In this document: piece by piece, positions 4,977 through 62,003 of the stretch | How the letters are laid out: the number at the start of each line of letters is the position of its first letter | Numbering within the stretch: position 1 is the stretch's first letter | Source: Ranitomeya imitator | Lineage: Eukaryota | Direction: 5' to 3' | Length of the DNA: 64,000 nt | NCBI RefSeq assembly: GCF_032444005.1 | Contig: NC_091283.1 | Coordinates: 23,870,001-23,934,000 of the forward strand | Program-made: the position numbers and the translations under genes | The notes under the pieces: model-generated | What the model saw: only the letters and a program-made list of their open reading frames with translations | What the model was told of the DNA's origin: nothing | Database searches by the model: none

Positions 4977-5287
4977 TTTACCATTGGGTGGAGATGCGAG
5001 CGAAGATGAGGATCATGGGTTTCCGCGGAGCCGCCATTAAACCAATGAACGAGGAAGCGGCGGCAGACTTGGGGGCGGAGCTTCTAGGGGAAGCCACCAT
5101 CTTTTTAATCGGAGGCGCTTGCATGGTGGCAGAATACTCGCGGCAGGCCACCAACTCCCGCCGGAAAGAGGAAGAGATGGAGGCCAGACTGAGCTCCATG
5201 GAGACAGAGATTGCTCGGCTGGGTCTCCTCACAGACGAGCTGGATGCGCGCGCTCGAGCCGCAGAGAGGCAGCAGGTGGCAAAGTGA
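4977..5287 (+). CDS. opa3: OPA3 (optic atrophy 3) terminal coding exon; exon 1 lies upstream of the window
   Basis: Acceptor ttctttgcag|TT (phase 1). Translation [53 protein letters not shown] matches the recalled OPA3 exon-2 sequence. TGA at 5285-5287. Confidence 0.95.
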
Positions 5288-9281: not shown

Positions 9282-9354
9282 CTACAAAGAACACAAAGTC
9301 AGAGAATGGAAAGAAAAGGCAAAACCCACCGACCCCTGACACCCTAACACTGAC

Positions 9355-9400
9355 CTCGGCAGCGTGGTGCTTCCCTTGTCCCACGGGCGACGGGCCGGCT
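9355..9400 (-). CDS. vasp: VASP exon 9: EPARRPWDKGSTTLPR
   Basis: gtcttgcag|AG ... GAG|gtcagt, phase 1 to 2. Conserved RRPWE/DK..TLPR motif. Confidence 0.93.
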
Positions 9401-10219
9401 CTGCAAGACACAATATGACAGATGTGAGGGGTCAACAGAACCACAAAAATCCCAACCCCTCCCCGACACTGACAAAGCACCAGCTCTATTACTGACAACC
9501 TGTATACTATGTATGAGAGGTTGTCAGACCCGCCCCTGGTGATGATATAACGGCTCGGGACCCAATTCCTCAAGCAATTGTCAGTGGTCTCGTAAGACTG
9601 ACACTTTTGAAGTTCTTGCACCATAGACCCAGGGGGTCTGCAGAGTGGGGTCCGCAGACTTATTGATAAGTGACTTTGCTGCATCTCACGCCAGCAGCAG
9701 CGGTGGACAATGACGACTCGGGGGTCCGAGAATTCATGGTGTGATCCCAGGGGTGGAAAAACCACTGGAAATCTCATTTCTCAAGATTTCGTTCACCGAC
9801 TGCTAAGAAAATCACAGCAGGAAAAAATCTGCCGTGTGTGAATTTATGCTGCAGACGCCACGACGGATTTAACCCTTTGTATTGCAGCATGCGTGCTAAT
9901 CCGGACCTGTTCAACAATGAAAGGAGGGTGCTTAATAAATGGAGGGAATCATAAAGAGAGGGGAAGTGGGTAACAAAGATTCTTCTCTTTTTTTTTTTTG
10001 CATCAATTCCGAATTCTGACAAAAAAACTGAATTGAAAACTGCATGAGCGATTTCCACCCCAAAGACGGGGGCCCGGGCACACGGTGCTAGCAAAAATCA
10101 CCAATATCCCCACCTACCCACAGTATCATGAATCACCTACTGTCACCTGCAGCCCCTTCCATCACATCTGCTCCCTTCTCCTCTGCATCTTCCACCTTAT
10201 CGCAGGTGTTTGCAACCCC

Positions 10220-16997: not shown

Positions 16998-17228
16998 CTG
17001 AACCAAGTAGAAAAAAAAAAAAAGGTCAATAAATCACCAATATCCCCTCATCCTCACCCACTCAAAGCATCCGGATCTGTCTACAACCACATCTGCACCC
17101 GCCCCTTCCCTGCCACCTCCAACCTCCCACAGCCACACCTGCATCCGTCACTGGCTACTGTCCACATCACCTTAAATCTCCCCTGTAACCTCGTACTCCC
17201 CCCCACATTCCCCTTCTTTTTTTCTTAC

Positions 17229-17494
17229 CTTTGACACTTTTTTCAGCTTGGCCGCAGCTAAGGCAGCTGCCAGGCCTCCACCGCTCGATTCAGCCCCTCC
17301 AATCACTCCTCCTGAAGGCAAGGGTGGTGGAGGAGGAGGGCCACTCCCAGGAGGAGCTGGTGGACCCCCAGGAGGAGCTGGTGGACCCCCAGGAGGAGCT
17401 GGTGGACCCCCAGGAGGAGGCGGTGGACCCCCAAAAGAAGGTGGTGGTCCTGGTGGTGGGGGTGGTCCAGCTGATACTGGGGTGACTGAAGCAA
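17229..17494 (-). CDS. vasp: VASP exon 6: polyproline region plus G-actin-binding motif (GLAAALAAAKLKKVSK)
   Basis: ctcttttag|TT ... AAG|gtaag, phase 1 to 0. GPPPPP profilin-binding repeats and the KLKKVS motif. Confidence 0.95.
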
Positions 17495-17698
17495 CTAAAA
17501 GAGAAGTGATGGTTATTGCCGGCCATTGTACCCCACCCTAAACAGAAGCCTCCTAATGTGTATAAATGAAGAGGAAAACCATCATCAGCCGCCCGGAATA
17601 CTGAGATAACATTAAAGGGCCTTGGGGGGTCTCTGATTTACTCCGATGACTTAACATTAGGCCTGTGAGCTGTTTTTGACCCTCTTATGCCCCCGTAC

Positions 17699-17961: not shown

Positions 17962-18312
<351 letters not shown>

Positions 18313-23886: not shown

Positions 23887-24013
23887 TATATTTGATACAT
23901 GATACACACCTGGTGCATAGACACATATACTACTTACATATATGGTACATATGCACATTACACATAAATGTGACACACACACACACTACAATATATGATG
24001 CCCCCATGTTTAC

Positions 24014-24182
24014 CTGCTGATCAGGCTGCTTCCTCCCAACCACGCGGTACGACTGGCCCCCTGCGCTGTAGTAGAGCTGGACTCGGCTGTGTCCGGCGGG
24101 CCCAGTCCCAGCATTGATCCATTTCTTACTGGAATCATCATAGACCATGACGGTGGCTCTGGCCGTGATCACCGGTGTCTCA
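24014..24182 (-). CDS. vasp: VASP exon 2: EVH1 domain N-terminal half
   Basis: SETPVITARATVMVYDDSSKKWINAG...YRVVGRKQPDQQ; ctctgcag|T ... CAG|gtaaac, phase 2 to 0. Confidence 0.97.
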
Positions 24183-24399
24183 CTGCAGAGAAGAGGAAGA
24201 CGATGAGCAAAGAAATTCATGACTACCACCCCCACTACAACTCCCAGCATCTCCTGATATGCCGGAGGGACACAACACACTCCATCAGCGTTGTGGTGTC
24301 CCACCCTGTGGACGCAAAGTCACATCAGAGCCGTTATCAGGTGTAATTGGGGGGGGCTCTATATACATGTATGTATGTACACCCCTGGCCGGACACCAG

Positions 24400-28643: not shown

Positions 28644-28779
28644 CCGGGTACTGTATACACCCATATATAATACCACCGGTACAGTATACGCTTTATACAT
28701 TACCCCCCGGGCCTGTATACACCCGCACATGACAGTATATACACCGACACATGGCGCAGACAGGCCGGACCCCTCTCAC

Positions 28780-28784
28780 CTCAT
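28780..28784 (-). CDS. vasp: VASP exon 1 coding part (ATGAG|gtgag)
   Basis: gcagcATGAG|gtgaga. A 5-nt coding first exon is typical of Ena/VASP genes; it joins exon 2 as Met-Ser-Glu-Thr and sits in a GC-rich region. Confidence 0.85.
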
Positions 28785-29200
28785 GCTGCTGGCGCCTCCT
28801 CCTGGCAGGAATGTGCCCTCTCACCTGTGCGGCCCCCACCCTAACTCTCCTCGGCCCCTCAGCTATCTGGGCATAGCAGGCAGTGGCCCCTGCAGCAGCC
28901 GCCTCCTCCTCCTCCCGGGGCCCCGGGCTCTGTGTCCTCAGCCGCTCCCTAGCAGATCTATAGAGGCATCGGTCACTCCAGCTCCCTCTGCTCCCGTCTC
29001 TTTCTTTCTTTCCTCTCTGTTACCAGCTATCACTTCCTCTCTTTCGGGATCTGCCTTCTCTTAAAGCGGCCACAAGCCACAGCCCCACCACTTAAAGCAG
29101 CAACGCCACCTGCACCTTCCCCCACAGCCGGAGCTGCAGCCCCCGGGGGTTCGTGCAGTATGGCGGGAGGGCGCTCACACCTGGCAGGTGACTGCACGAC
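28785..29200 (-). promoter_or_regulatory. GC/CpG-rich 5' UTR and promoter region of VASP
   Basis: Locally CpG-rich unique sequence directly upstream of the VASP ATG. Boundaries approximate. Confidence 0.5.
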
Positions 29201-29625
29201 ACACCACCATCTACTCTACAGAAAGTCCAAATCCACACGGAAAATATTTATAACTACTTTTCAGGCCGACACCGACCAATCACAGCGCAGATTTCATTAA
29301 TCTTCCCAAAGATTCTGCACAGCAGCCGGATCCCAAAATACGAGGGACACACAGGTTTGTGCAGGTCTAAAGGGGCTAAAATCCAAATAAAGCCCTGGGG
29401 AGACACAGGCCTGAGACTCTACAGTGACCCCTGGCGGTTGGTTGGGTGAACTGCACTTACAGATGACAGCTGACACTCTAGAGTGGAACAGACCCTGCAG
29501 AGGGCAGGAGAGGCGCCATCTTCTGAAACCAATTGGTCACACTCAGAAATACAGACCCACAACCTGCTCATCACATATCACAAAAATTCTTTAATAAAGT
29601 TAAAAGGGAAAAAAAAAAAAAAGTG

Positions 29626-29943
29626 TCATTCTGGTATGAGGCGGATGAGCTGAGCTTCCCCTGGCGCCAGCTGCACGCGGTCCTGGAGCAGCTGACCTCG
29701 GTTATGCTCCGGTTTGGTAGTCAACAATAATCGAACAGAGTTTGAGAAATAAGGAAAATGCAGAGACACATTGTGCGATCGATCAGAAGGACCAATAAGG
29801 ACTAAAAGCGTGGAACAGGCCCAGGAGGATAAAGCGCTGTACGAGGAGCCATTAGATAAACGCTGCAACCAACCGGAGTGGAGCGCGGGGTTCTGGGATC
29901 GCAGGTGGAGAAGAGAACGGAGCCAGGAGGGCGGCGGGAGGGA
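29626..29943 (-). CDS. SLC3A2/4F2hc-like gene, exon 8 (last; C-terminal beta-sandwich domain)
   Basis: ttgtctccacag|TCC, phase 0. SLLHLRSQNPALHSG...LLVL...VRLLLTTKPE...RVQLAPGEAQLIRL* aligns by eye with human 4F2hc LSDQRSKERSLLHG...FLVVL...LLLSTQPG...RLKLEPHEGLLLRF. ATTAAA at 29595-29590. Confidence 0.85.
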   Translation of the reverse strand, partial: SLPPPSWLRSLLHLRSQNPALHSGWLQRLSNGSSYSALSSWACSTLLVLIGPSDRSHNVSLHFPYFSNSVRLLLTTKPEHNRGQLLQDRVQLAPGEAQLIRLIPE

Positions 29944-30029
29944 CTGTGGAGACAACGCAGAAAAAGACGTCAACCGGGGACACGCAGATTATCAGAAAGA
30001 CATTACTATGTAAAAACACCTAATACGTA

Positions 30030-30725
30030 TATATTATAATACTGCCCCCTATGTACAAGAATATAACTACTATAATACTGCCCCTATGTACAAGAATATA
30101 ACTACTATAATACTGCCCCTATGTACAAGAATATAACTACTATAATACTGCCCCTATGTACAAGAATATAACTACTATAATACTGCCCCTATGTACAAGA
30201 ATATAACTACTATAATACTGCCCCTATGTACAAGAATATAACTACTATAATACTGCTCCTATGTACAAGAATATAACTACTATAATACTGCTCCTATGTA
30301 CAAGAATATAACTACTATAATACTGCTCCTATGTACAAGAATATAACTACTATAATACTGCTCCTATGTACAAGAATATAACTACTATAATACTGCCCCC
30401 TATGTACAAGAATATAACTACTATAATACTGCTCCTATGTACAAGAATATAACTACTATAATACTGCTCCTATGTACAAGAATATAACTACTATAATACT
30501 GCCCCTATGTACAAGAATATAACTACTATAATATTGCTCCTATGTACAAGAATATAACTACTATAATACTGCTCCTATGTACAAGAATATAACTACTATA
30601 ATACTGCCCCTATGTACAAGAATATAACTACTATAATACTGCTCCCTATGTACAAGAATATAACTACTATAATACTGCTCCTATGTACAAGAATATAACT
30701 ACTATAATACTGCCCCCTATGTACA
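30030..30725. repeat. 35-bp satellite (tataatactgcccctatgtacaagaatataactac)
   Basis: Visible tandem units, period 35. Confidence 0.95.
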
Positions 30726-31005
30726 GTAAAAGAACCTACTCAAAAGTGAATATATAGAATCCAATATTAGATATATTTAATAATATTATTTTAAAGTAAT
30801 TATTAAACAAGGAGAAGCTGACAGCAAACATCACAGTAAATATAGTACAAAAAGTGGATACATCATAAGGGGCACAGATCCCATAGTATATACAAATATA
30901 ACTAGCTAAATGAATAACCTCCCAAAAATATCCATATATATAAGTACCAGTATAGATGTGATCAGTGACTCCAGCTCCAACGTACGTTTCGCCACTGCGG
31001 CTTTT

Positions 31006-31052
31006 ACAGAGTCCTTGAAAAAGCCGCAGTGGTGAAACGTACGTTGGAGCTG
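31006..31052 (+). ncRNA. Minimal type I hammerhead ribozyme variant, copy 1
   Basis: tcc-UUGAAAA-A-GCC(gcagu)GGU-GAAAC-guac-GUU-gga: core with U3:A8 covariation, stem II, palindromic stem III. Confidence 0.5.
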
Positions 31053-31176
31053 GAGTCACGGATCACATCTATACTGGTACTTATATATATGGATATTTTT
31101 GGGAGGTTATTCAAGTACCAGTATAGATGTGATCCGTGACTCCAGCTCCAACGTACGTTTCGCCACTGCGGCTTTT

Positions 31177-31223
31177 ACAGAGTCCTTGAAAAAGCCACAG
31201 TGGCGAAACGTACGTTGGAGCTG
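31177..31223 (+). ncRNA. Minimal type I hammerhead ribozyme variant, copy 2
   Basis: tcc-UUGAAAA-A-GCC(acagu)GGC-GAAAC-guac-GUU-gga; stem II fully Watson-Crick paired. Confidence 0.55.
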
Positions 31224-32938
31224 GAGTCCCTGGGAGTCACGGATCACTTCTATACTGGTCATTTAGCTAGTTATATTCGTATACACTATGGGATTTGTGC
31301 CCCTTATGATGTATCCACTTTATGTACTATGATCAAATCAGAAAAAGTACCTGCCTAGTCAAGTGGCAATGCTCCAAATAGGTATAATCATCATCCAAAA
31401 GAGCAAATATGAAGCAACATAGCCATAAAATAAGTCAAATTTTATTAGAACACATATCAATACATAAGACAAAAAAGTTTATAAAAACTGGGGCAGAAAA
31501 TATGCAAAAAGAAAAACCACCGTAAGGAAAAATATAATGCAAATACTAAATGTATCGAGGTAATCAATGAAAAAAATATATATATAATGACTTCAATATG
31601 TTAAACTGTACGCACCAGACAAATGTCAGACATGGCAATAGCCTATGCCGTGCAAAAGTGAAAACAGAAGAAAGACCGGCATGCTACATAGTCCCATCAG
31701 ACAGTGTTCACATGTAATACAAAAAATGCAGTAAATCCCTACGGCAAACCAAAATTGGTTAAATAGTACACTGCAGACAGAATATCTAAATATATAATAA
31801 GAAAAAAGTTCTTAAGTAAAATGGAGCCATCCTCAAAAAATATCAAAAAATGTTTATTAACTGTAAGAACTTAGTATGCGCAGCAAATGAACATAGCGAT
31901 AAACCTATGCCTATAATGCAACCAGATGGCTAAACCAGTGTATGCAACTAAGCAGAGAATTTGGAGGGATGATGGGATAAAGCAGCAACCCCTGCTACCA
32001 CCGCTAGGTAATTACTATGGCTGCTTATTTCCCATCGGTTGCACTGCTGCACGTTTAGCCTATGTGACTCTAAACTTAGACGGGTCTTTATCCCATCATC
32101 CCTCCAAATTCTCTGCTTAGTTGCATACACTGGTTTAGCCATCTGGTTGCATTATAGGCATAGGTTTATCGCTATGTTCATTTGCTGCGCATACTAAGTT
32201 CTTACAGTTAATAAACATTTTTTGATATTTTTTGAGGATGGCTCCATTTTACTTAAGAACTTTTTTCTTATTATATATTTAGATATTCTGTCTGCAGTGT
32301 ACTATTTAACCAATTTTGGTTTGCCGTAGGGATTTACTGCATTTTTTGTATTACATGTGAACACTGTCTGATGGGACTATGTAGCATGCCGGTCTTTCTT
32401 CTGTTTTCACTTTTGCACGGCATAGGCTATTGCCATGTCTGACATTTGTCTGGTGCGTACAGTTTAACATATTGAAGTCATTATATATATATTTTTTTCA
32501 TTGATTACCTCGATACATTTAGTATTTGCATTATATTTTTCCTTACGGTGGTTTTTCTTTTTGCATATTTTCTGCCCCAGTTTTTATAAACTTTTTTGTC
32601 TTATGTATTGATATGTGTTCTAATAAAATTTGACTTATTTTATGGCTATGTTGCTTCATATTTGCTCTTTTGGATGATGATTATGTACTATGATGTTTGC
32701 GGTCAGCTTCTCCTTGTTTAATAATTCTATTTAATAACATTCTGATACTTGGATTCTATATATATTCACTTTTGAGCAGGCTCTTAGATTTTTTTATAGT
32801 GAATATTACTTATTTAGGCGAGTTCCTCACTGAGTGGTTTGTTTGCCCCATGTACAGTGTTGTTCCCACTATGATATCTTTTTCAGCCATGTGATAATGT
32901 CTCGGTACTTCTGATGTGGTGACCCCGGGGTGACACAC

Positions 32939-33025
32939 CTGGCTCAGGGACAGGATGACGGTTCCGGGGAGGGTTACAGCCAGGAATTGTCTCAACTCCA
33001 GAGACTCAATGTCATCGGGCGTCAC
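32939..33025 (-). CDS. SLC3A2-like exon 7: VTPDDIESLELRQFLAVTLPGTVILSLSQ
   Basis: ttttctgcag|GTG ... CAG|gtgtgt, phase 0 to 0. TLPGT motif is conserved in GH13 enzymes and SLC3 proteins (human LFTLPGTPVFS). Confidence 0.85.
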
Positions 33026-33085
33026 CTGCAGAAAATAAGCGGTTACTTTATGACGTGCCCTTCCCCTCCCCCGGTCCCCACTCAC

Positions 33086-33227
33086 CTCCCAGGCCATATC
33101 CTTCATGGCTGACCCCATAGCGAACGGTTGCAGGTTCCAGTCAGGTAGAGGACAGGTGCGCAGAAGTTGGGACTTATTTTTGGGTGCGTCCTCATCGTCA
33201 CACAGCCAATTAGGAAGCAGGATCAGC
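33086..33227 (-). CDS. SLC3A2-like exon 6: (R)LILLPNWLCDD...MKDMAWE
   Basis: ataattag|G ... GAG|gtgagt, phase 2 to 0. Same position and phase as the recalled human R|LLIAG...CSWS| exon. Confidence 0.72.
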
Positions 33228-33296
33228 CTAATTATAGAGTTTTGTTAGAGCGTTTTCTTTTGTGTGGACACGTCACTGCGATTACTCGGTTGTCAC

Positions 33297-33346
33297 CTTT
33301 CCTCCTCGCTGGCGATTTCTACTTCTTTCAGGAGGATCTGAGAGAT
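33297..33346 (-). CDS. SLC3A2-like exon 5: ISQILLKEVEIASEEE(R)
   Basis: ttttggcag|ATC ... AAG|gtgac, phase 0 to 2. SEEER|LIL parallels human SEDR|LLI. Confidence 0.75.
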
Positions 33347-33529
33347 CTGCCAAAATCAAGACATATCGTAGTCACCGACTATAGTGCAAGTGTCCACATG
33401 TGACATCAGATCAGAAGGAGTCACAGCCCCACCCCCTGGTGATGACATCAGAAATGAGACCACACCCCTTATACTACACCCCGCCCCCATCTATCACTGC
33501 TGACAACCTGCCTGTATATTATGTGTGAG

Positions 33530-33920
33530 GTTGTCACATAGCCCCGCCCCCTGGTGATGACATCACTGATCTAATGACGTCATCAGGCATGAGACCACAC
33601 CCCTTATACTCCAGCACTGGCCTATCATCTACCAGGCTGTATACTGTGTGAGGTTGTCAGCCCCACCCCCTGGTGATGACATCACTGATCTAATGACGTC
33701 ATCAGGCATGAGACCACACCCCTTATACTCCAGCACTGGCCTATCATCTACCAGGCTGTATACTGTGTGAGGTTGTCAGCCCCACCCCCTGGTGATGACA
33801 TCACTGATCTAATGACGTCATCAGGCATGAGACCACACCCCTTATACTCCAGCACTGGCCTATCATCTACCAGGCTGTATACTGTGTGAGGTTGTCAGCC
33901 CCGTCCCCTGGTGATGACAT
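33530..33920. repeat. 119-bp tandem repeat (~3.3 copies) containing TGACGTCA
   Basis: Period 119. CRE palindromes at 33575, 33694 and 33813. Confidence 0.9.
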
Positions 33921-34275
33921 CACAGTTGTCAGCCCCGCCCCTGAGGTACTAGTGCTCACAGTCCCTCATTTCCCCTCTCACCATCATTACAGTGGTTTTC
34001 TTGTCACCTAAAAGCTGGAACCCAGATGCTCCATCTTCCATCCAGCTCCGGGCAGAGTCCTGCACAAGAGGGGTTCAAGTTACTAAGAATGAGGGTCCCC
34101 AGCGCTGGGGTGTGGAGGCGGCCGGTGACAGGTGTGGCTGATGACAGACATTTTATAGTAGCTGCTGGGGGTAGTAGTAATATCTACAGTTCTCACTCTA
34201 CAGTAGAAAAGCCCGCAGTCCGGGCACAGAACCTTCATCCCTGTGCCACACATTCACAGTTTCTCCGATACTCAC

Positions 34276-34329
34276 CTCATGCTCTCCCATCTGTAGGAAA
34301 GACTGATCATTACTGACACACGAGGGATC
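34276..34329 (-). CDS. SLC3A2-like exon 4: DPSCVSNDQSFLQMGEHE (a NAGNAG acceptor could add Q)
   Basis: ttccttcagcag|GAT ... GAG|gtgagt, phase 0 to 0. The donor is strong; the acceptor choice is inferred. Confidence 0.55.
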
Positions 34330-35336
34330 CTGCTGAAGGAACGAGCGGGGTTCTTTACCGCAACAGCAGAAAGGCCACGATGGTTCATTCATGTGAATGC
34401 GTAAAATAGAAGAGCGCCCCCTACCGGAGGATTGAAGGGCCATACATCCACAGTTTATCCATGATGACCCATCCTCTCCTCTCCTGCAGGGTCCTCTCCT
34501 CTCCAAACAGCTTGTCTGCTCTTACAGTAAAGACAACTGTCCATTTCTGGAAACAGAACCTTCATCCTTCCAACAGGAGGAGGCGCTCGCATCGTCTGAG
34601 AAGACAGAGTATCACAATAAATACAGGACGGGTCATTTCTATAGTGGCTCAGATTTATCTTCTCCTCAGACGCCTCTTCTTAACGCTAAACCCAAGTAAT
34701 TCCCCCGATTATCTCTAACCGTCTCCGGCCACCCGTCAGTTTGGATATTCTTTGCGCCATCTCCAGATGAAGAGACGCTCAGTTATAAAGTGCTGACAAT
34801 ACGGTGCCACGTGTGCGTTTTATAGGGGTGTCCGGGTTTCCTGTCTGAATGGAGCAGAGAACAGCTGCAGATATCTGGACCTGAGCCCCTAATAAGAGTG
34901 GCCGCCTTTAGAAGCAGCTGCCTGACGCTGAGCTCCCTGGACAGCGGAGCCGCACACTGCAGAGCTTTTGGCCAAGTTTCCACAATGAGTTTTTGACGCT
35001 GCAGATTTTCTGCACCAATTACAGAAATTAGGTTCATGAGGTTTTTAAATTACATTTTTTTTCAGCTGCACTTATTTGATCCCTGTGGTCAGGTGGTAAA
35101 TCAACTGCTTTGTGCTGAAACGTCCCCGCTAATTAGTAGTGATAAAACATTATTGATAAAGTCATGTGCAGATAAGTGGTGTTTTTTTTTTGTTTTTTTA
35201 AGCCATCTCCTAAAAGTTGATTTAGAAAATCCACAAAAGGAAGACAAGAAAAAGAAACAAGTGTGAACAGAGTCTTACATTCTCTCCCCACAATCTCATG
35301 TATAAACCTCTCCCATAGACTGTAGGACATCATCAC

Positions 35337-35404
35337 CTTCAGCCTCTGGACTTGATGGCCGTCATACTCCTCCAGTATCTGGACCTCCAGGATGATGCGG
35401 AGAC
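35337..35404 (-). CDS. SLC3A2-like exon 3: (G)LRIILEVQILEEYDGHQVQRLK
   Basis: catgttcccag|GT, phase 1. GLRIILEV parallels human SIRVILDL. Donor AAG|gtgatg chosen because it restores phase 0, as in the recalled human TKVK| boundary. Confidence 0.68.
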
Positions 35405-35464
35405 CTGGGAACATGAAGACCACAGAGGTGATCAAGACTCTGGGCCTCGTCACTCAGCGCAGCC

Positions 35465-36905
35465 GTATAGACCTCCACGCCAGACACAGAATGCCACACC
35501 AGACAGACCTCCACGCCAGACACAGAATGCCACACCAGACAGACCTCCACGCCAGATATAGAATGCCACGCCGTACACAGACCATGCCGCACAGAATGCC
35601 ACACCAGACAGACCTCCACGCCATACACAGACCACCACGCCAGACACAGAATGCCACGCCATACACAGACCACCACGCCAGACACAGAACACCACGCCGC
35701 ACAGAATGCCACACCAGACAGACCACCACGCCATACACAGAATGCCACACCAGACAGACCACCACGCCATACACAGAATGTCACACCAGACAGACCACCA
35801 CGCCATACACAGAATGCCACACCAGACAGACCACCACGCCATACACAGAATGCCACACCAGACAGACCACCACGCCATACACAGAATGTCACACCAGACA
35901 GACCTCCACGCCATACACAGAATGCCACACCAGACAGACCACCACGCCATACACAGAATGCCACACCAGACAGACCACCACGCCATACACAGAATGCCAC
36001 ACCAGACAGACCACCACGCCATACACAGAATGTCACACCAGACAGACCACCACGCCATACACAGAATGCCACACCAGACAGACCACCACGCCATACACAG
36101 AATGCCACACCAGACAGACCACCACGCCATACACAGAATGCCACACCAGACAGACCTCCACGCCATACACAGAATGCCACACCAGACAGACCACCACGCC
36201 ATACACAGAATGCCACACCAGACAGACCACCACGCCATACACAGAATGTCACACCAGACAGACCTCCACGCCATACACAGAATGCCACACCAGACAGACC
36301 ACCACGCCATACACAGAATGCCACACCAGACAGACCACCACGCCATACACAGAATGCCACACCAGACAGACCACCACGCCATACACAGAATGTCACACCA
36401 GACAGACCACCACGCCATACACAGAATGCCACACCAGACAGACCACCACGCCATACACAGAATGTCACACCAGACAGACCACCACGCCATACACAGAATG
36501 CCACACCAGACAGACCTCCACGCCATACACAGAATGCCACACCAGACAGACCACCACGCCATACACAGAATGCCACACCAGACAGACCACCACGCCATAC
36601 ACAGAATGCCACACCAGACAGACCACCACGCCATACACAGAATGTCACACCAGACAGACCTCCACACCGTACACAGACCACCACGCCATACACAGAATGT
36701 CACACCAGACAGACCTCCACACCGTACACAGACCACCACGCCATACACAGAATGTCACACCAGACAGACCTCCACACCGTACACAGACCACCACGCCATA
36801 CACAGAATGTCACACCAGACAGACCTCCACACCGTACACAGACCACCACGCCATACACAGAATGTCACACCAGACAGACCGCCACGCCATACACAGACCG
36901 CCACA
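35465..36905. repeat. 36-bp minisatellite (cacaccagacagaccaccacgccatacacagaatgc)
   Basis: Visible tandem units; fills intron 2 of the SLC3-like gene. Confidence 0.95.
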
Positions 36906-36914
36906 TGCACTTAC

Positions 36915-37031
36915 CGTATCTTTGCCCCTCGGTCACCTGACCTCTCACACTCCCGTTAGTCACCTCCTCATGGGCGACAATGAGACCCCCACACCCCAGA
37001 GATGACGCCTCTCGTATTCTGTGCGACACAT
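36915..37031 (-). CDS. SLC3A2-like exon 2: (D)VSHRIREASSLGCGGLIVAHEEVTNGSVRGQVTEGQRY
   Basis: gtcttacag|AT ... ACG|gtaagt, phase 1 to 1. RIREASSLGCGGLIV parallels human RLDYLSSLKVKGLVL. Confidence 0.82.
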
Positions 37032-37207
37032 CTGTAAGACATGGGGGGCAAGAGATGGGTAGAGGGGACAGGTCAGCCTGCAGCCACATAAGGCACGTTC
37101 TCCACATGCTGGGAGTTGTAGTTTCACGTCATCCAGAGAGCATCACCAACCCAAGATCCCTGCCCCCTCCGTCACACACGGCAGTGGGGGTCCCACATAT
37201 AACTCAC

Positions 37208-37418
37208 CGGTCTGTGGCGCCAGTCCTGCGATGCGGCAGATCACTCGGCGTTGGTGCCACGTGCTGGGTGGTGGTGGCACGTACGCCCGGGCGAGAATGG
37301 CGATGGCAGAACTAAGCAGCGCAGCCAGTAATATCCAGAAGAGCAGCAGCAGCCCCCGCCGTACGCACACCCAGCCGCGGGCGTCCTGCTCGGGCCTCAG
37401 GAGCGGCTGGGACTCCAT
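37208..37418 (-). CDS. SLC3A2-like exon 1: short cytoplasmic tail, single transmembrane helix and neck
   Basis: Strong Kozak ggagacATGG. GWVCVRRGLLLLFWILLAALLSSAIAILARA...WHQRRVICRI parallels 4F2hc GWVRTRWALLLLFWLGWLGMLAGAVVIIVRA...WWHTGALYRI. Donor CCG|gtgagt, phase 1. Confidence 0.88.
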
Positions 37419-37853
37419 GTCTCCCCGGCTGCGTCTCCTCCTACAGATCTTATACTTTGGTATTTGCTGACCAGAAAATCACCACAAAGTGTGAAGAGGA
37501 GTGTCACATTCTACATCCACCATCGTCGCCCCACCCGAGGCCACAACGGGGTCCGGGCAACAGACCAACCTCCGTACAATCACAGTACCACCAAAAATGG
37601 CACAAAAAACCCTGCAAAATTGTGCACCCAATCTACAAAAGCAGGTACCTGATAAGTCAGTGGCCAGCCGTGCATAACTAGAAACCCACAATAATGGCGG
37701 CCGCCTCGTTGGGGAATGGCTAGTTGAGCGGTTTCCAGACACCGCAGGCGCTGATCTCTGCTAACAGCTGCCACCTCCAAACACACTGAGGCCATGATCC
37801 AGGGCGCAGCGAGGGTTAAATGTGAGCCCAGGTGAAGCTGCAGTGGTGATCAC

Positions 37854-37993
37854 CTGGACCGGGCGGGGGAGGCCTCCATGATGATTCCTGTGGTTTCCAT
37901 GGAGACGTGGTGATCATGGGGGTCACGATTATAGTCACCACAGTCTGACGGATCCTGATCAAAATCACCCTCATCATCCTCGTCCCGCTGCAT
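37854..37993 (-). CDS. Tentative upstream acidic exon of the SLC3A2-like gene (MQRDEDDEGDFDQD...)
   Basis: Open acidic frame ending CCAG|gtgatc (phase 2). Splicing to the AG before 37440 is in frame with ATG 37418, but that acceptor has a weak pyrimidine tract. Confidence 0.3.
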
Positions 37994-38402
37994 CTGGTCT
38001 TCATGATTTGTTACTTATTGTCTTGTGATTTCAATTTTTTTTTCTTCTTTAGTAAAATATTTGGAAAGCTGCTTTGTGATCACTGTAACAAAATCGCCAC
38101 ATGTGAATAAAAACCGCACATGGAGAACTATAAATATGGCCGCCTTTATGGATTGTATGTGTGGGTGGGGTGTGGCCGCTTTTTGTTACAGCATGGCTTC
38201 ATATCCATAAGCTGCATTCACACCAGTAGCACGGCGGCCATGACGGTGGGAAAACAACAGAAATAATGGCAGCTACATTGGATGCCACATTACTGAGGTA
38301 CAATAGGAGGAGAGTGCAGTATACAGCACAGAGCAGCATATGGCGCCATACCCAGGCCCCCAACACTGCACAGTACAGATCCATAATGGTGAGGGGTCAA
38401 TT

Positions 38403-41400
38403 TGTATGACTGTAGTATGGCGGCGCGGAGACGAAGGATTGTAATATAGCGGTGCGGAGACGTATGATTGTAGTATAGAGGTGTGGAGACGTATGATTGT
38501 AGTATAGCGGTGCGGAGACGTAGGATTGTAGTATAGAGGTGCGGAGACGTATGATTGTAGTATAGAGGTGCGGAGACGTAGGATTGTAATATAGCGGTGC
38601 GGAGACGTAGGATTGTAGTATAGAGGTGTGGAGACGTATGATTGTAGTACAGCGGTGTGGAGACGTATGATTGTAGTATAGCGGTGTGGAGACGTATGAT
38701 TGTAGTATAGCGGTGTGGAGACGTATGATTGTAGTATAGCGGTGTGGAGACGTATGATTGTAATATAGCGGTGTGGAGACGTATGATTGTAGTATGGTGG
38801 TGTGGAGACGTAGGATTGTAGTATAGCGGTGTGGTGACGTATGATTGTAATATAGCGGTGTGGAGACGTAGGATTGTAGTATAGCGGTGTGGAGACGTAC
38901 GATTGTAGTATAGAGGTGTGGAGACGTATGATTATAATATAGCGGTGTGGAGACGTATGATTGTAGTATGGCGGTGTGGAGACGTATGATTGTAGTATAG
39001 CGGTGTGGTGACGTATGATTGTAATATAGCGGTGTGGAGACGTAGGATTGTAGTATAGCGGTGTGGAGACGTACGATTGTAGTATAGAGGTGTGGAGACG
39101 TATGATTATAATATAGCGGTGTGGAGACGTATGATTGTAGTATGGCGGTGTGGAGACGTATGATTGTAGTATAGAGGTGTGGAGACGTATGATTGTAATA
39201 TAGCGGTGTGGTGACGTATGATTGTAGTATGGCGGTGTGGAGACGTATGATTGTAGTATAGCGGTGTGGAGACATATGATTGTAGTATAGCGGTGTGGTG
39301 ACGTATGATTGTAGTATGGTGGTGTGGTGACGTATGATTGTAGTATGGCAGTGACGTATGATTGTAGTATGGCGGTGTGGTGACGTATGATTGTAGTATG
39401 GCGGTGTGGTGACGTATGATTGTAGTATGGCGGTGACGTATGATTGTAGTATGGCGGTGTGGTGACGTATGATTGTAGTATGGCGGTGTGGAGATGTATG
39501 ATTGTAGTATAGCAGTGTGGAGACGTAGGATTGTAGTATAGAGGTGTGGAGACGTAGGATTGTAGTATAGAAGTGTGGAGACGGATGATTGTAGGAAAGC
39601 GGTGTGGAGACGGATGATTGTAGTATAGAGGTGTGGAGACGGATGATTGTAGGAAAGCGGTGTGGAGACATATGATTTTAGCATAGCGGGGTGGAGACGT
39701 ATGATTATATTATAGCGGTGTGAAGACGTAGGATTGTAGTATAGTGGTGCGAAGACGTAGGATTGTAGTATATCGGTGTGGTGAAGTATGATTGTAGTAT
39801 AGAGGTGTGGAGACGTATGATTGTAGTATAGCGGTGTGGAGACGTATGATTGTAGTATAGCGGGGCGAAGACGTAGGATTGTAGTATATCGGTGTGGTGA
39901 AGTATGATTGTAGTATAGAGGTGTGGAGACGTATGATTGTAGTATAGAGGTGTGGAGACGTAGGATTGTAGTATAGCGGTGTGGTGACGTATGATTGTAG
40001 TATGGCGGTGTGGAGACGTATGACTGTAGTATGGTGGTGTGGAGACGTATGATTTTAGCATAGCAGGGTGGAGACGTATGATTGTAGTATAGCAGTGTGG
40101 AGACGTATGACTGTAGTATAGCAGTGTGGAGATGTATGATTGTAGTATAGAGGTATGGAGACGTATGATTGCAGTATAGCGTTGTGGAGACGTATGAGTG
40201 AAGTATAGCAGTGTGGAGATGTATGATCGCATTATAGCGGTGACGTATGATTGTAGTATAGAGGTATGGAGACGTATGATTGCAGTATAGCGTTGTGGAG
40301 ACGTATGAGTGAAGTATAGCGTTGTGGAGACGTATGACTGTAGTATAGCAGTGTGGAGATGTATGATCGCATTATAGCGGTGACGTTTGATTGTAGTATA
40401 GCGTTGTGGAGACGTATGATTGCAGTATAGCGGTGCAGTGATGTATGATTGTAGTATAGCGGTGCAGTGATGTATGATTGTAGAATAGCGGTGCAGTGAT
40501 GTATGATTGTAGTATAGTGGTGTGCAGATATCTGGTGACAGGATTGTGGGGTGAAGACGTATGACTGTAGTATAGTGGTGTGGAGTTGTATGATTGTAGT
40601 ATAGTGGTGTGGAGACGTATGATTGTAGCATGGCGTTGTGGAGACGTATGATTGTAGTATGGCGGTGTGGAGACGTATGATTGTAGTATGGCGGTGTGGA
40701 GACGTTTGATTGTAGTATGGCTGTTTGTAGACGTATGGTGGTGTGGAGTCCTATGATTGTAGTATGGCGGTGTGGAGTCCTATGATTGTACTATAGCTGT
40801 GACGTATGATTGTAGTATAGCGATGTGGAGACGTATGATTGTAGTACAGTGGTGACGTATGATTGTAGTATGGCAGTGTGGAGTCGTATGATTGTAGTAT
40901 GGCAGTGTGGAGTCGTATGATTATAGTATAGCGGTGGGGAATCCTATGATTGTACTATAGCGGTGATGTATGATTGTAGTATAGCGATGTGGAGACGTAT
41001 GATTGCAGTATAGGGTTGTGTAGACATATGATTGTAGTATTGCAGTGTGGAGATGTATGATTGCAGTATAGCGGTGACCTATGACTGTAGTATAGCGTTG
41101 TGGAGACGTATGATTGTAGATTAGCAGTATGATTTTAGTATAGCAGTGTGGAGACTTATGATTATAGTATAGCGGTGTGGAGTCGTATGATTGCAGTATA
41201 GCGTTGTGGAGACGTAGGATTGTAGTACAGCGGTGTGGTGACGTATGATTGTAGTATAGCGGTGACGTATGATTGTAGTATAGCGGTGTGGAGTTGTATG
41301 ATTATAATATAGCGGTGTGGAGTCCTATGATTGTAGTATACCGGTGACGTATGATTGTAGAATAGCGGTGTGGAGTCGTATGATTGTAGTATAGCGGTGA

Positions 41401-44400
41401 CATATGATTGTAGTATAGCGGTGTGGAGACGTATGACTGTAGTATAGCAGTGACGTATGATTGTAGCATAGTGGTGTAGAGACGTATGATTGTATAGCGG
41501 TGTGGAGACGTATGATTGTAGTATAGCGATGTGGAGACGTATGATTGTAGTATAGCGGTGTGGAGACGTATGAATGTAATATAGCGGTGTGGAGTCGTAT
41601 GATTGTAGTATAGCGGTGTGGAGTCCTATGATTGTAGTATAGCGGTGATGTATGATTGTAGTATAGCGGTGTGGAGTCCTATGATTGTAGTATAGCGGTG
41701 ACGTATGATTGTAGTATAGCGGTGTGGAGATGTATGATTGTAGTATAGCGGTGACATATGATTGTAGTATAGTGGTGTGGAAACGTATGATTGTAGTATA
41801 GCGGTGTGGAGACGTATGACTGTAGTATAGCAGTGACGTATGATTGTAGCATAGTGGTGTGGAGACGTATGATTGTAGTATAGCGGTGTGGAGACGTATG
41901 ATTGTAGTATAGCGATGTGGAGACGTATGATTGTAGTATAGCAGTGACGTATGATTGTAGTATAGCGGTGTGGAAACGTATGATTGTAGTATAGCGATTT
42001 GGAGTCGTATGATTCTAGTATAGCGGTGACATATGATTGTAGTATAGCGGTGTGGAGACGTATGAATGTAATATAGCGGTGTGCAGTCGTATGATTATAG
42101 TATAGCGGTGTGGAGTCCTATGATTGTAGTATAACGGTGACGAATGATTGTAGTATAGCGGTGTGGAGTCCTATGATTGTAGTATAACGGTGACGAATGA
42201 TTGTAGTATAGCGGTGTGGAGTCCTATGATTGTAGTATAGCGGTGACGTATGATTGTAGTATAGCGGTGTGGAGATGTATGATTGTAGTATAGCGGTGAC
42301 ATATGATTGTAGTATAGCGGTGACGTATGATTATACTATAGGGGTGTGGAGTCGTATGATTATAGAATAGCGGTGTGGAGTCGTATGATTGTAGTATAGC
42401 GGTGACGTATGATTGTAGAATAGCGGTGTGGAGTCCTATGATTGTAGTATAGCGGTGACGTATGATTGTAGTATAGCGGTGTGGAGATGTATGATTGTAG
42501 TATAGCGGTGACATATGATTGTAGTATAGTGGTGTGGAAACGTATGATTGTAGTATAGCGGTGTGGAGACGTATGACTGTAGTATAGCAGTGACGTATGA
42601 TTGTAGCATAGTGGTGTGGAGACGTATGATTGTAGTATAGCGGTGTGGAGACGTATGATTGTAGTATAGCGATGTGGAGACGTATGATTGTAGTATAGCA
42701 GTGACGTATGATTGTAGCATAGTGGTGTGGAAACGTATGATTGTAGTATAGCAGTGTGGAAACGTATGATTGTAGTATAGCGATTTGGAGTCGTATGATT
42801 GTAGTATAGCGGTGACATATGATTGTAGTATAGCGGTGTGGAGACGTATGAATGTAATATAGCGGTGTGGAGTCGTATGATTATAGTATAGCGGTGTGGA
42901 GTCCTATGATTGTAGTATAACGGTGACGTATGATTGTAGTATAGCGGTGTGGAGTCCTATGATCGTAGTATAGCGGTGACGTATGATTGTAGTACAGCGG
43001 TGTGGAGATGTATGATTGTAGTATAGCGGTGACATATGATTGTAGTATAGCGGTGACGTATGATTATACTATAGGGGTGTGGAGTCGTATGATTACAGAA
43101 TAGCGGTGTGGAGTCGTATGATTGTAGTATAGCGGTGACGTATGATTATAGTATAGAGGTGTGGAGTTCTATGATTGTAGTATAGCGGTGACGTATGATT
43201 ATAGTATAGAGGTGTGGAGTTCTATGATTGTAGTATAGCGGTGACATATGATTGTAGTATAGCGGTGTGGAGTCATATGATTGTAGTGGTGACGTATGAC
43301 TGTAGTATAGCGGTGTGGAGTCGTATGATTATAGAATAGCGGTGTGGAGTCGTATGATTGTATTATAGCGGTGACATATGATTGTAGTATAGCGGTGACG
43401 TATGATTATAGTATAGAGGTGTGGAGTAGGGTTGAGCAAAACGGATCGGACAAATTCAAAAATCGCCGACTTTCGGTAAAGTTGGGCTTCATGAAACCCG
43501 ACCCGATCCTAGTGTGGGATCGGCCATGCGGTCGGCGATCTTCACGCCAAAGTCACGTTTTGTATGACGCGTTCAGCGCCATTTTTCAGCCAATGAAGGA
43601 GCGTGAGCAGCATGATGACATAGGTCTCAAGGGCGTGAACGCCTATCGCCAGTGCTGTAGCGATTTGCAATGTGCAACATCAGCTTTTCTGTGGAGAGAG
43701 AGAGAGAGAGAGAGAGATTTCCCATTGACTTGCATTGGGTTTCGTGTTTCGGTCGAACCCCGACTTTTCGCGATAATCAGCCGATTTCACTTGACTCGAC
43801 TTTTGAGAAAGTCGGGTTTCGCGAAACCCAACTCGATCTTAAAAAAGTTAAAGTCGCTCAACCCTAGTGTGGAGCCCTATGATTGTAGTATAGTGGGGAC
43901 GTATGACTGTAGTATAGCGGTGTGGAGTTGTATGATTATAGAATAGTGGTGTGGAGTCGTATGATTGTATTATAGCGGTGACATATGATTGTAGTATAGA
44001 GGTGTGGAGTCCTATGATTGTAGTATAGCGGTGACGTATGATTATAGTATAGAGGTGTGGAGTCCTATGATTGTAGAACAGCGGTGACGTATGATTGTAG
44101 AATAGCGGTGTGGAGTCCTATGATTGTAGTATAGTGGTGACGTATGATTGTAGTATAGCGGTGTGGAGATGTATGATTGTAGTATAGCCGTGACATATGA
44201 TTGTAGTATAGCGGTGACGTATGATTATAGTATAGGGGTGTGGAGTCGTATGATTGATGTATAGCGGTGTGGAATCCTATGATTGTAGTATAGCGGTAAC
44301 ATATGATTATAGTATAGAGGTGTGGAGTCCTATGATTGTAGTATAGTGGTGACATATGACTGTAGTATAGCGGCGACATATGACTGTAGTATAGCGGCGT

Positions 44401-46990
44401 GGAGTCGTATGATTATAGAATAGCAGTATGGAGTCGTATGATTGTAGTATAGCGGTGTGGAGTCGTATGATTATAGAATAGCGGTGTGGAGTTGTATGAT
44501 TGTAGTATAGCGGTGACATATGATTGTAGTATAGCAGTGACGTATGATTATAGTATAGTGGTGTGGAGTCCTATGATTGTAGTATAGAGGTGACATATGA
44601 TTCTAGTATAGCGGTGACGTATGATTATAGTATAGTGGTGTGGAGTCCTATGATTGTAGTATAGCGGTGACATATGATTCTAGTATAGCGGTGATGTATG
44701 ATTATAGTATAGTGGTGTGGAGATGTATGATTGTAGTATAGCGGTGACATATGATTGTAGTATAGCGTTGACATGATTCTAGTATAGCGGTGACGTATGA
44801 TTATAGTATAGTGGTGTGGAGATGTATGATTGTAGTATAGCGGTGACATATGATTGTAGTATAGCGGTGACATATGATTCTAGTATAGCGGTGACGTATG
44901 ATTATAGTATAGTGGTGTGGAGATGTATGATTGTAGTATAGCGGTGACATATGATTGTAGTATAGCGGTGACATGATTCTAGTATAGCGGTGACGTATGA
45001 TTATAGTATAGTGGTGTGGAGATGTATGATTGTAGTATAGCGGTGACATATGATTGTAGTATAGCGGTGACGCTATGATTCTAGTATAGCGGTGACGTAT
45101 GATTATAGTATAGTGGTGTGGAGATGTATGATTGTAGTATAGCGGTGACATATGATTGTAGTATAGCGGTGACATATGATTCTAGTATAGCGGTGACGTA
45201 TGATTATAGTATAGTGGTGTGGAGATGTATGATTGTAGTATAGCGGTGACATATGATTGTAGTATAGCGGTGACATATGATTCTAGTATAGCGGTGACGT
45301 ATGATTATAGTATAGTGGTGTGGAGATGTATGATGGTAGTATAGCGGTGACGTATGATTATAGTATAGCGGTATGGAGTCGCATGATTGAAGTATAGCGG
45401 TGACATATGATTGTAGTATAGAGGTGTGGAGTCGCATGATTGAAGTATAGCGGTGACGTATGATTGTAGTATAGAGGTATGGAATCGCATGATTGAAGTA
45501 TAGCGGTGACATATGATTGTAGTATAGAGGTGTGGAGATGTATGATGGTAGTATAGCGGTGACATATGATTGAAGTATAGCGGTGACATATGATTGTAGT
45601 ATAGAGGTGTGGAGATGTATGATGGTAGTATAGCGGTGACATATGATTGAAGTATAGCGGTGACGTATGATTATAGTATAGTGGTGTGGAGATGTATGAT
45701 GGTAGTATAGCGGTGACATGATTGTAGTATAGCGGTGACATATGATTGTAGTATAGCGGTGACGTATGATTATAGTATAGTGGTGTGGAGTCCTATGATT
45801 GTAGTATAGAGGTGACATATGATTCTAGTATAGCGGTGACGTATGATTATAGTATAGTGGTGTGGAGTCCTATGATTGTAGTATAGCGGTGACATATGAT
45901 TCTAGTATAGCGGTGATGTATGATTATAGTATAGTGGTGTGGAGATGTATGATTGTAGTATAGCGGTGACATATGATTGTAGTATAGCGTTGACATGATT
46001 CTAGTATAGCGGTGACGTATGATTATAGTATAGTGGTGTGGAGATGTATGATTGTAGTATAGCGGTGACATATGATTGTAGTATAGCGGTGACATATGAT
46101 TCTAGTATAGCGGTGACGTATGATTATAGTATAGTGGTGTGGAGATGTATGATTGTAGTATAGCGGTGACATATGATTGTAGTATAGCGGTGACATGATT
46201 CTAGTATAGCGGTGACGTATGATTATAGTATAGTGGTGTGGAGATGTATGATTGTAGTATAGCGGTGACATATGATTGTAGTATAGCGGTGACGCTATGA
46301 TTCTAGTATAGCGGTGACGTATGATTATAGTATAGTGGTGTGGAGATGTATGATTGTAGTATAGCGGTGACATATGATTGTAGTATAGCGGTGACATATG
46401 ATTCTAGTATAGCGGTGACGTATGATTATAGTATAGTGGTGTGGAGATGTATGATTGTAGCATAGCGGTGACATATGATTGTAGTATAGCGGTGACATAT
46501 GATTCTAGTATAGCGGTGACGTATGATTATAGTATAGTGGTGTGGAGATGTATGATGGTAGTATAGCGGTGACGTATGATTATAGTATAGCGGTATGGAG
46601 TCGCATGATTGAAGTATAGCGGTGACATATGATTGTAGTATAGAGGTGTGGAGTCGCATGATTGAAGTATAGCGGTGACGTATGATTGTAGTATAGAGGT
46701 GTGGAGATGTATGATGGTAGTATAGCGGTGACATATGATTGAAGTATAGCGGTGACATATGATTGTAGTATAGAGGTGTGGAGATGTATGATGGTAGTAT
46801 AGCGGTGACATGATTGTAGTATAGCGGTGACATATGATTGAAGTATAGCGGTGACATATGATTGTAGTATAGAGGTGTGGAGTCGCATGATTGAAGTATA
46901 GCGGTGACATATGATTGTAGTATAGCGGTGACATATGATTGTAGTATAGAGGTGTGGAGTCGCATGATTGTAGTATAGCGGTGTGCAGAC
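38403..46990. repeat. ~8.6-kb 29/24-bp minisatellite (gtatgattgtagtatagcggtgtggagac)
   Basis: Visible tandem units filling the interval between the divergently transcribed SLC3-like gene and RTN2. Confidence 0.96.
43427..43866. mobile_element. hAT-type MITE (440 bp) inserted in the minisatellite
   Basis: TIRs TAGGGTTGAGC / GCTCAACCCTA; 8-bp TSD GTGTGGAG at 43419-43426 and 43867-43874. Confidence 0.88.
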
Positions 46991-47230
46991 GTCTGATGAC
47001 AGGACTGTGGGGTGGAGCGGTCCCTTGTCTCTCTTGCTGTTGGTCCATGAATGGCTGTGTGCAGTCATTTCCTGCCCCCTCTCAGGCCTTTGTCTGCTGC
47101 GCTCGCTCCTCCCTGTGTTTGTGAGTTGTGTGTGTCAGGTTGCTCCACAATGAGATGCTAGGCAGGGAGACAACACGCTGTGGGGTGCGCTCGTGTGGGT
47201 CTGTATGGGTGTCACCGGCAGACAGCGGAT

Positions 47231-47261
47231 ATGGGACACGTCCTGTCGTTCACACACTGCA
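47231..47261 (+). CDS. rtn2: RTN2 exon 1: MGHVLSFTHC
   Basis: ATGGGACACGTCCTG...TGCA|gtaagt, phase 1. Matches the RTN2 N-terminus MGxVL..F.HC|K. Confidence 0.9.
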
Positions 47262-47464
47262 GTAAGTGTCGCCTGCTGTATCATTGTGTGTCGCTGCGAG
47301 TGCAGGTGCGGCGTCTCCTCCATCATTGTCTATTATGTAGGGGCTGCATATGGGTGTATCCTATAGAGAGCGAGCGTGGCGTCCTCGTGTGACGGTCACG
47401 CAGATTATCACATGTCATGTGCGACCGTCACACTACTACAGTAGAATCTGATGCTCTGACTGTA

Positions 47465-54402: not shown

Positions 54403-54645
54403 GTAAAGACTCCATGTGTATGTGTGTCCTCTAAACTAGTCACATGACATGCACTATTGATTTGTAGCCCCGCCCCTTCTTAGTGGCCCCTCAGCTCACG
54501 TTTTCAAAAACTTTCAGGTAAAATGAAAGCTGCACTGTGATTGGTTGCTCTGGGCACCAATGGCCGCTGTACTGACAGATGAGGGCCTGTCATGAAGCCA
54601 CATGGTCAGTGCCGCTCTGATTCTACCATCTTGTCTTTGTTGTAG

Positions 54646-54951
54646 GTGACCTCGATGATGCCACGGTGACCCTGGCTGATCTGTGGCCCTTACCTTCACC
54701 TCAGGAGCCAACCTTCTCCTACATTACCATTGGCAGCTCAGCCCCATTAACTCGTCCCACAGTTAGGGCCCGAAGAGGACGGGGTCTGAGCCGAGGACAG
54801 TTACCAAGGAAACAGGAACCAGAAGAGGAGACTGTGACCTATGTTCTTTTGGAGAAGGCGTGTCAGATCACACAAGCCCTGCCCCCGAGGAACTATGAGG
54901 AACAGACGCTAGTGGAGAAGCCCCAGCCAAGAGTATCAGGGATCACAATGG
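54646..54951 (+). CDS. rtn2: RTN2 exon 3 (contains PQEPTFSYITI)
   Basis: tttgttgtag|GT ... ATGG|gtgaga, phase 1 to 1, open frame. TFSYI motif of RTN2. Confidence 0.82.
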
Positions 54952-54967
54952 GTGAGACATATATAAT

Positions 54968-61898: not shown

Positions 61899-62003
61899 GA
61901 TAGGTTTCCCTGTCATACTTGTGTCGCCCGGGCGATGTATGAATTACACCTCACACCCATGACTGTGGGGGGCTCCCTGACTTTCCCCCATTTCTTCCCG
62001 CAG

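Follow-up and report, generated by a model that had tools for sequence, protein, structure and literature searches.

A frog-wide SLC3-like gene beside RTN2 and its possible origin in the early vertebrate genome duplications

The region considered here is a repeat-rich, gap-free stretch of 64,000 nucleotides (nt) of Ranitomeya imitator DNA (contig NC_091283.1, positions 23,870,001 to 23,934,000; hereafter the window, in whose coordinates positions are given), in which four genes follow one another in the order OPA3(+), VASP(-), SLC3-like(-), RTN2(+); this order had been read from the letters alone in an earlier note on the same DNA, and it is borne out by Pfam, by the PDB and by cross-frog alignments. 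The SLC3-like gene, with which we are mainly concerned, lies in the interval 28784-47261, extending from the start codon of VASP to the end of the first coding exon of RTN2 (47263); this interval holds a functional, fast-evolving and anuran-wide gene, whose predicted product is an SLC3-type (4F2hc-like) protein with type-II membrane topology. As to its origin, the earlier note had proposed an ohnologue, that is, a copy dating back to the two rounds of whole genome duplication of early vertebrates (1R and 2R); this is, in our opinion, the best explanation available, though unproven and favoured with modest confidence.

The gene is composed of eight exons on the minus strand, running from 37418 to 29629, with seven out of seven introns of the GT-AG type; the exon translations reproduce, at every residue, the protein XP_069611533.1 (356 amino acids (aa), an "uncharacterized protein" in NCBI). 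Exon 1 (37208..37418) carries the start codon, a 15-residue tail, the membrane helix and the neck, and is matched by Pfam SLC3A2_N (1.1e-5); exon 2 (36915..37031) was located by tblastn, exon 3 (35337..35404) by the contig joint 34058>35336 and a loose contig end at 35405, exon 4 (33982..34059) by contig joints, exon 5 (33297..33346) by the joints 33226>33296 and 33346>33982, exon 6 (33086..33227) again by contig joints, and exon 7 (32939..33025) by the joints 29943>32939 and 29943>33086, being skipped in the isoform X2; exon 8 (29629..29943, residues 252-356) is defined by the joint 29943>32939 and by a match to DUF3459 (2.3e-5). The stop codon TGA occupies 29626-29628, an ATTAAA signal is present, and the transcript ends near 29586-29609.

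Expression of the gene is documented by six splice joints found in the contigs of four public runs, which belong to three studies, with exons 3 to 8 spliced in succession (E3-E4-E5-E6-E7-E8) and CT..AC borders on the plus strand; that the four runs are RNA is a guess, yet the existence of spliced SLC3-like transcripts is shown by the joined forms devoid of introns that the contigs carry. The skipping of exon 7, seen in contigs of two runs, corresponds to the annotated isoform X2 of 327 aa. Contigs of two runs retain the 60-nt intron 6 (33026-33085), whose length preserves the frame and which contains no stop codon; in these contigs an additional C follows position 33062 and would put the sequence out of frame. 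At position 29868 all four runs have G where the window has A, a synonymous difference at Leu277 (TTG to CTG), the window base being a minor allele or an individual difference in the assembly. The ratio of nonsynonymous to synonymous substitution rates (dN/dS) is 0.33-0.38 in comparison with Eleutherodactylus and Dendropsophus, a value that indicates constraint together with fast change.

The family to which the protein belongs is recognized by Pfam at its two ends, exon 1 matching SLC3A2_N and exon 8 DUF3459, while no match to PF00128 is obtained in the protein; nine frog members reach 18-33 bits with SLC3A2_N, the cut-off of 27 bits being passed by Engystomops only, and DUF3459 scores 25.1 bits with exon 8 alone and 22.1 bits with the full protein (cut-off 22 bits). 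When the frog-family profile is compared with solved structures, human and mouse 4F2hc are retrieved with an E value of 2e-8 (37 bits), sucrose isomerases with ~5e-3, and rBAT with 0.34 (13 bits); the last exon alone, searched by phmmer against the PDB, gave no match. An AlphaFold2 (AF2) model with a mean predicted local distance difference test (pLDDT) score of 63.7, good in the barrel and poor in the C domain (pLDDT below 50), displays a helix at residues 9-45, eight strand-helix units without domain B, and then beta strands. The 14 best Foldseek matches of this model are all 4F2hc (E ~1e-11); VIA-align assigns Z scores of 16-17 to 4F2hc and to bacterial GH13 enzymes alike, sequence identity being highest to 4F2hc (20-21%). 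Similarly, the language-model look-alikes of the protein are chordate SLC3A2 clusters, those among unnamed clusters being only bacterial and glycosidase-like. As modelled, the product is a protein with a very short cytoplasmic tail, one membrane helix, a trimmed GH13-type (beta/alpha)8 barrel lacking domain B, and a C-terminal beta domain.

The protein shares with SLC3A2 (4F2hc, the CD98 heavy chain) the type-II single-pass topology, a helix of the WV..R..LLLLFW type with its neck (Pfam SLC3A2_N), and the architecture of a GH13 barrel that lacks domain B and leads into a C-terminal beta domain, SLC3A2 being its best match both in sequence and by Foldseek; it differs in its size (356 aa, whereas 4F2hc has ~530), in its cytoplasmic tail of ~15 residues, in its trimmed barrel loops and in an identity of ~20% only. 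A further difference concerns the cysteine bonded to the light chain, which in 4F2hc we take to be Cys109: no counterpart is found among the residues of the frog neck, and no neck cysteine between the end of the helix and the conserved Trp is present in any aligned frog member. The conserved Cys61 (in the motif VICR) falls in the predicted strand beta-1 (59-62), the region in question being residues 43-61 (window 37238-37290). A cysteine on the cytoplasmic side (WVCVRR) occurs in several frog species. Judged on these features, the protein is a predicted miniature 4F2hc-like heavy chain that lacks the bridging cysteine, one of the features by which the family is defined; such a trimmed ectodomain would represent a natural minimal version, which could show what parts of a heavy chain are needed. 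The other heavy chain, SLC3A1 (rBAT), is also encoded by an SLC3 gene of the same paralogon adjoining a PPM1 place (PPM1B-SLC3A1; see below), but in rBAT domain B is retained and the glucosidase-like barrel is nearly complete (PMC8537225), and the match of rBAT to the frog profile is marginal (E=0.34).

The distribution of the gene was explored by using the last exon as a phmmer query in an exhaustive scan of 1.84 billion representatives, which returned seven true relatives, all of them frogs and all "uncharacterized"; profile searches added Anomaloglossus, Dendropsophus, Pseudophryne, Mixophyes, Leptodactylus and Engystomops. Members are found in Ascaphus, in Rhinophrynus, in myobatrachids, in ranoids and in hyloids, and the reading frame is intact in at least 14 species. 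The maximum-likelihood tree of 14 frog members matches the frog species tree, Ascaphus and Rhinophrynus standing apart from Neobatrachia and, within the latter, myobatrachids, ranoids and hyloids each clustering together; since the gene tree follows the species tree, the gene has been passed on vertically, in single copy, ever since living frogs last shared an ancestor. The possibility that we are dealing with an artefact of annotation or assembly, or with a decaying and functionless pseudogene, might be suggested by the low Pfam scores with a single member past the SLC3A2_N cut-off, by the moderate pLDDT of the AF2 model (63.7) and by the retention of intron 6 in some contigs; it is, however, hardly compatible with a frame kept intact in so many species, with a dN/dS of ~0.35, with a gene tree equal to the species tree and with canonical splicing in four runs, and we regard it as very improbable indeed. 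On the grounds of splicing, dN/dS and the species-tree-like gene tree this possibility was rejected.

The position of the gene is also fixed, as read in five neobatrachian genera. In Dendropsophus the order is RTN2(-), SLC3-like(+), VASP(+), the Reticulon gene ending 2.6 kb upstream on the opposite strand, and a 387-aa gene, whose coding sequence (CDS) start aligns with the VASP start of the window, beginning 5.7 kb downstream of the SLC3-like gene; in Hyperolius a Reticulon gene lies head-to-head with the SLC3-like gene at a distance of 1.25 kb; in Eleutherodactylus (one contig) and in Mixophyes (one locus), the RTN2 exon-1 block, the SLC3-like gene and VASP exon 2 occur in the same order. 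No informative neighbours are recorded within 10 kb of the gene in Pseudophryne, Rhinophrynus and Staurois. The gene is not peculiar to R. imitator: it is anuran-wide and sits in the same slot in the five genera.

In mammals the place next to RTN2 belongs to a different gene, PPM1N, encoding a PP2C phosphatase. No PF00481 (PP2C) match was found in any of 145 open reading frame (ORF) pieces of at least 35 aa taken from both strands of the non-satellite parts of 28558-54980, the only clear Pfam matches among them being SLC3A2_N and DUF3459, nor in any of 138 intergenic ORFs from three other frog loci; the claimed absence of PP2C exons between VASP and RTN2 is thus confirmed for the window. Also correct was the remark that little unique sequence is available there: four tandem arrays account for 11,124 of the 18,478 bases of the interval, and only ~1.2 kb of unique DNA, around an 8.6-kb array of 29-nt units, separates the start codons of the SLC3-like gene and of RTN2. 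PPM1N itself is old, because ppm1na and/or ppm1nb are present in zebrafish and trout.

In the human genome PPM1N lies at 19q13.32, head-to-head with RTN2. PPM1N and the frog gene belong to unrelated protein families, and no PP2C sequence is detected in the searched ORFs of the frog interval; nevertheless they share the same slot, upstream of VASP and head-to-head with RTN2. The published human order is FOSB, RTN2, PPM1N, VASP, OPA3, GPR4, EML2 (PMC4015772), in which the VASP-PPM1N-RTN2 succession and the contact between PPM1N and RTN2 on which the earlier note relied are both to be found. A four-fold 2R paralogon is also documented: Rtn1-4, Eml1-4, Fos/Fosb/Fosl1/Fosl2, Mark1-4, Ehd1-4 and the Sipa1 family have one member in each of four paralogous blocks (PMC4236578). 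The adjacency of PPM1B and SLC3A1 is part of a syntenic group, PPM1B-SLC3A1-PREPL-CAMKMT-SIX3-SIX2, shared by human chromosome 2 and zebrafish chromosome 13 (PMC8478756 supplement, Fig. S3 legend; PMC8607452), and SLC3A2 likewise sits in a paralogous block, lying in the pig within ~1 Mb of MARK2, POLR2G, TTC9C, HNRNPUL2, BSCL2, ROM1 and EML3 (PMC12071171), several of which are markers of the so-called Dact4 block (PMC4236578). Combining the window order with these published relations, the frog gene resides in a block (RTN2/VASP) paralogous both to that of SLC3A1 and to that of SLC3A2 (RTN3/EML3).

On this basis the following scenario may be drawn. The SLC3-like gene would descend from an SLC3 gene adjoining PPM1 in a pre-duplication vertebrate block (RTN ... 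PPM1-SLC3 ... SIX/EML), and the copy placed on the RTN2/VASP/OPA3/EML2 block would have been kept in the frog lineage; the deletion of PPM1N between RTN2 and the SLC3-like gene would then have left the latter head-to-head with RTN2 in frogs, while in mammals it would have been PPM1N that remained and this SLC3 copy that disappeared. If the arrangement of PPM1B and SLC3A1 is taken as a guide, the genes probably stood originally in the order RTN2, PPM1N, SLC3, VASP, in which case the frog gene would stand beside the emptied slot of PPM1N rather than replace its occupant; the statement that it "occupies the PPM1N slot" holds as far as place and orientation are concerned, and is refined in this respect. 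The gene is not a retrocopy, because it has seven introns, and the chance landing of a DNA-level duplicate in exactly this slot and in the orientation of PPM1N is improbable. The ohnologue interpretation is favoured because two of the four blocks carry the known SLC3 genes, with a PPM1 gene directly adjoining in one case, and a third carries the frog gene, placed and oriented as a partner of PPM1N should be; it is sustained by the gene order, by the absence of PP2C at the locus and by the paralogon frame, and it is weakened by the fact that the gene has been seen in frogs only.

Several observations weigh against a duplication-era origin. Every SLC3-like member found belongs to a frog: the exhaustive last-exon scan of the 1.84 billion representatives, whose weakest listed matches score ~35-37 bits, contains no relative outside the Anura, and none emerged from three word-seeded profile searches (full length, enlarged and ectodomain only), which are weak negatives because each was capped at 8000 candidates and because two of the three missed one true frog member. 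Should the gene be truly confined to frogs, a date at the genome duplications would call for many independent losses; according to a rough extrapolation from the family rate, orthologues from salamanders and caecilians, if annotated, would be visible, whereas those of amniotes and fishes might not. The divergence from 4F2hc is no proof of age either, because ~1.2 changes per site separate Ascaphus from Ranitomeya in the family tree. Finally, in the trees of six families the 14q-type and 19q-type blocks form one pair and the 2p-type and 11q-type blocks the other (PMC4236578), and because of this pairing a relic on the 19q-type block is expected to be an outgroup to rBAT and 4F2hc together; the 4F2hc-like appearance of the frog protein (helix and neck of the SLC3A2_N type, no domain B, 37 bits to 4F2hc vs 13 to rBAT) does not obviously fit this prediction. 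The mismatch may be explained by rBAT-like and 4F2hc-like genes that predated the duplications, or possibly by a frog gene reduced in parallel with 4F2hc; that it reflects a later duplicate of slc3a2 we consider rather unlikely.

Such a duplicate deserves discussion in its own right. According to this explanation, slc3a2 would have been duplicated at the DNA level, with its introns, in the frog stem lineage, inserted by chance beside rtn2, and then shortened and rapidly diverged, PPM1N being lost or moved independently. That all detected members are anuran agrees with it; so does the closeness of the protein to 4F2hc rather than to rBAT, which it predicts and the simplest form of the published pairing (PMC4236578) does not, and the rate of the family is sufficient to reach ~20% identity to 4F2hc in 250-300 million years. 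It requires, however, that a rare inter-chromosomal copy retaining its introns should hit, in the right orientation and in a paralogous block, a slot that mirrors PPM1B-SLC3A1; moreover, since amniote and fish orthologues could score, by extrapolation, below ~35-37 bits, the searches are no proof that the family is confined to frogs. On balance, this origin appears doubtful, though it deserves serious consideration. More improbable still is an intermediate age, in which a duplicate arising in the sarcopterygian or tetrapod stem, hence older than frogs and younger than the genome duplications, would have disappeared from amniotes and perhaps also from salamanders and caecilians: the presence of the gene in all major frog lineages gives a minimum age only, and the 4F2hc-like features are consistent with an origin after the split of rBAT and 4F2hc, but the same positional coincidence is implied and no data point to that particular date. 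The ohnologue interpretation accordingly remains the one we prefer; the gene itself, demonstrated together with its expression, family likeness, age among frogs and constant position, is a more solid result than its duplication-era origin, to which, as to the order of the losses, we are led by inference.

Vertebrate heavy chains are described as two, rBAT and 4F2hc, mutations of the former being linked to cystinuria and overexpression of the latter to cancers (PMC8537225). The family may be larger than stated, including a third, anuran-wide member so far filed in NCBI as "uncharacterized protein". Zebrafish chromosome 15 carries si:dkey-202g17.3, an SLC3-family gene without a mammalian name, listed beside slc3a1, slc3a2a, slc3a2b and zgc:158423 (PMC8478756, Table 1); this gene could be the fish orthologue of the frog gene, its neighbours being given nowhere in the literature searched, where it is named in one paper only (PMC8478756). 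The chances seem to us evenly balanced that a third vertebrate SLC3 heavy chain ("SLC3A3") arose on the RTN2/VASP/EML2 block in the first or second genome duplication and is still present in frogs, and perhaps also in zebrafish in the guise of the unnamed gene of chromosome 15, the frog form being miniaturised, devoid of the light-chain disulfide cysteine and of the cytoplasmic tail, and either escorting SLC7 proteins non-covalently or having taken another job. A similar case is offered by Dact4, a fourth paralogue on a sister block that was kept in reptiles, coelacanth and ray-finned fishes and lost in mammals (PMC4236578); Dact4, however, is present in several distant lineages, whereas the SLC3-like gene has so far been seen in frogs only. 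If the scenario is true, sister lineages have kept different neighbours of one ancestral pair, PPM1N in mammals and the SLC3 copy in frogs, and the frog gene opens the history of the RTN-PPM1-SLC3 block to test.

The identity of the flanking genes rests on the following evidence. For OPA3, the last coding exon is contained in the ORF 4895..5284(+) (Pfam OPA3, 2.2e-23). VASP, on the minus strand, is represented by its C-terminal exon (ORF 9285..9431), with no Pfam match and with a translation containing the motif RRPWDKGSTTLPR, which we take to be that of VASP; by its proline-rich exon, recognized from the translation (ORF 17175..17537); by its second EVH1 exon (ORF 17962..18312; WH1, 1.3e-17), for which VASP is the best match among solved structures (PDB) with 98.6 bits vs 75.9 for ENAH and 74.5 for EVL; by its first EVH1 exon (ORF 23933..24319; WH1, 6.4e-8), with 82% identity to an E. 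coqui exon located downstream of the E. coqui SLC3-like gene; and by its 5' region and first coding exon (28754..29206), with the ATG at 28787-28785 and a GT donor directly after 28783. The latter block aligns with the annotated starts of the VASP CDS in Dendropsophus and Eleutherodactylus at a DNA identity of 77-85%, and the sequence ATGAG/GTGAGA at the VASP start is common to these two genera and Ranitomeya.

On the plus strand, the promoter and first coding exon of RTN2 fall within 46937..47463, with the ATG at 47231, the peptide MGHVLSFTHCS at 47231-47263 and a donor after 47263; over 508 nt this block shows 81% identity to Dendropsophus DNA at the annotated start of the Reticulon CDS, and its identity to the Eleutherodactylus sequence is 77%. 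The human RTN2 start presumably resembles the frog MGHVLS, which fits the N-myristoylation pattern Met-Gly-x-x-x-Ser. An N-terminal exon lies in the ORF 54621..54980(+), 87% identical to an ORF inside the annotated Dendropsophus Reticulon gene, and the exons of the reticulon-homology domain lie in two plus-strand ORFs, 60956-61264 and 61890-62189 (Pfam Reticulon, 7.6e-4 and 9e-3).

As for the tandem arrays, the gap between the starts of the SLC3-like gene and RTN2 is filled by the 29-nt unit array mentioned above (8.6 kb, 38404..46997, detected by Tandem Repeats Finder); related repeats occur in the same gap of Dendropsophus (locus positions 7700-9200), and it follows that, among hyloid frogs, a tandem array has persisted at this bidirectional promoter region. 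A 35-nt array of 19.6 copies (30035-30725) is contained in intron 7 of the SLC3-like gene; on it the summed contig depth in the four runs is ~1,000-16,000, vs 10-30 on the exons, the repeat being either very abundant genome-wide or transcribed. Intron 1 of VASP is filled by arrays of 22-nt and 37-nt units (24396-28143), and the first introns of RTN2 by a 30-nt unit over 6.4 kb (47482-53863) and by an 86-nt unit over 3 kb (54975-58004), the latter unit being found also inside the RTN2 gene of Dendropsophus.

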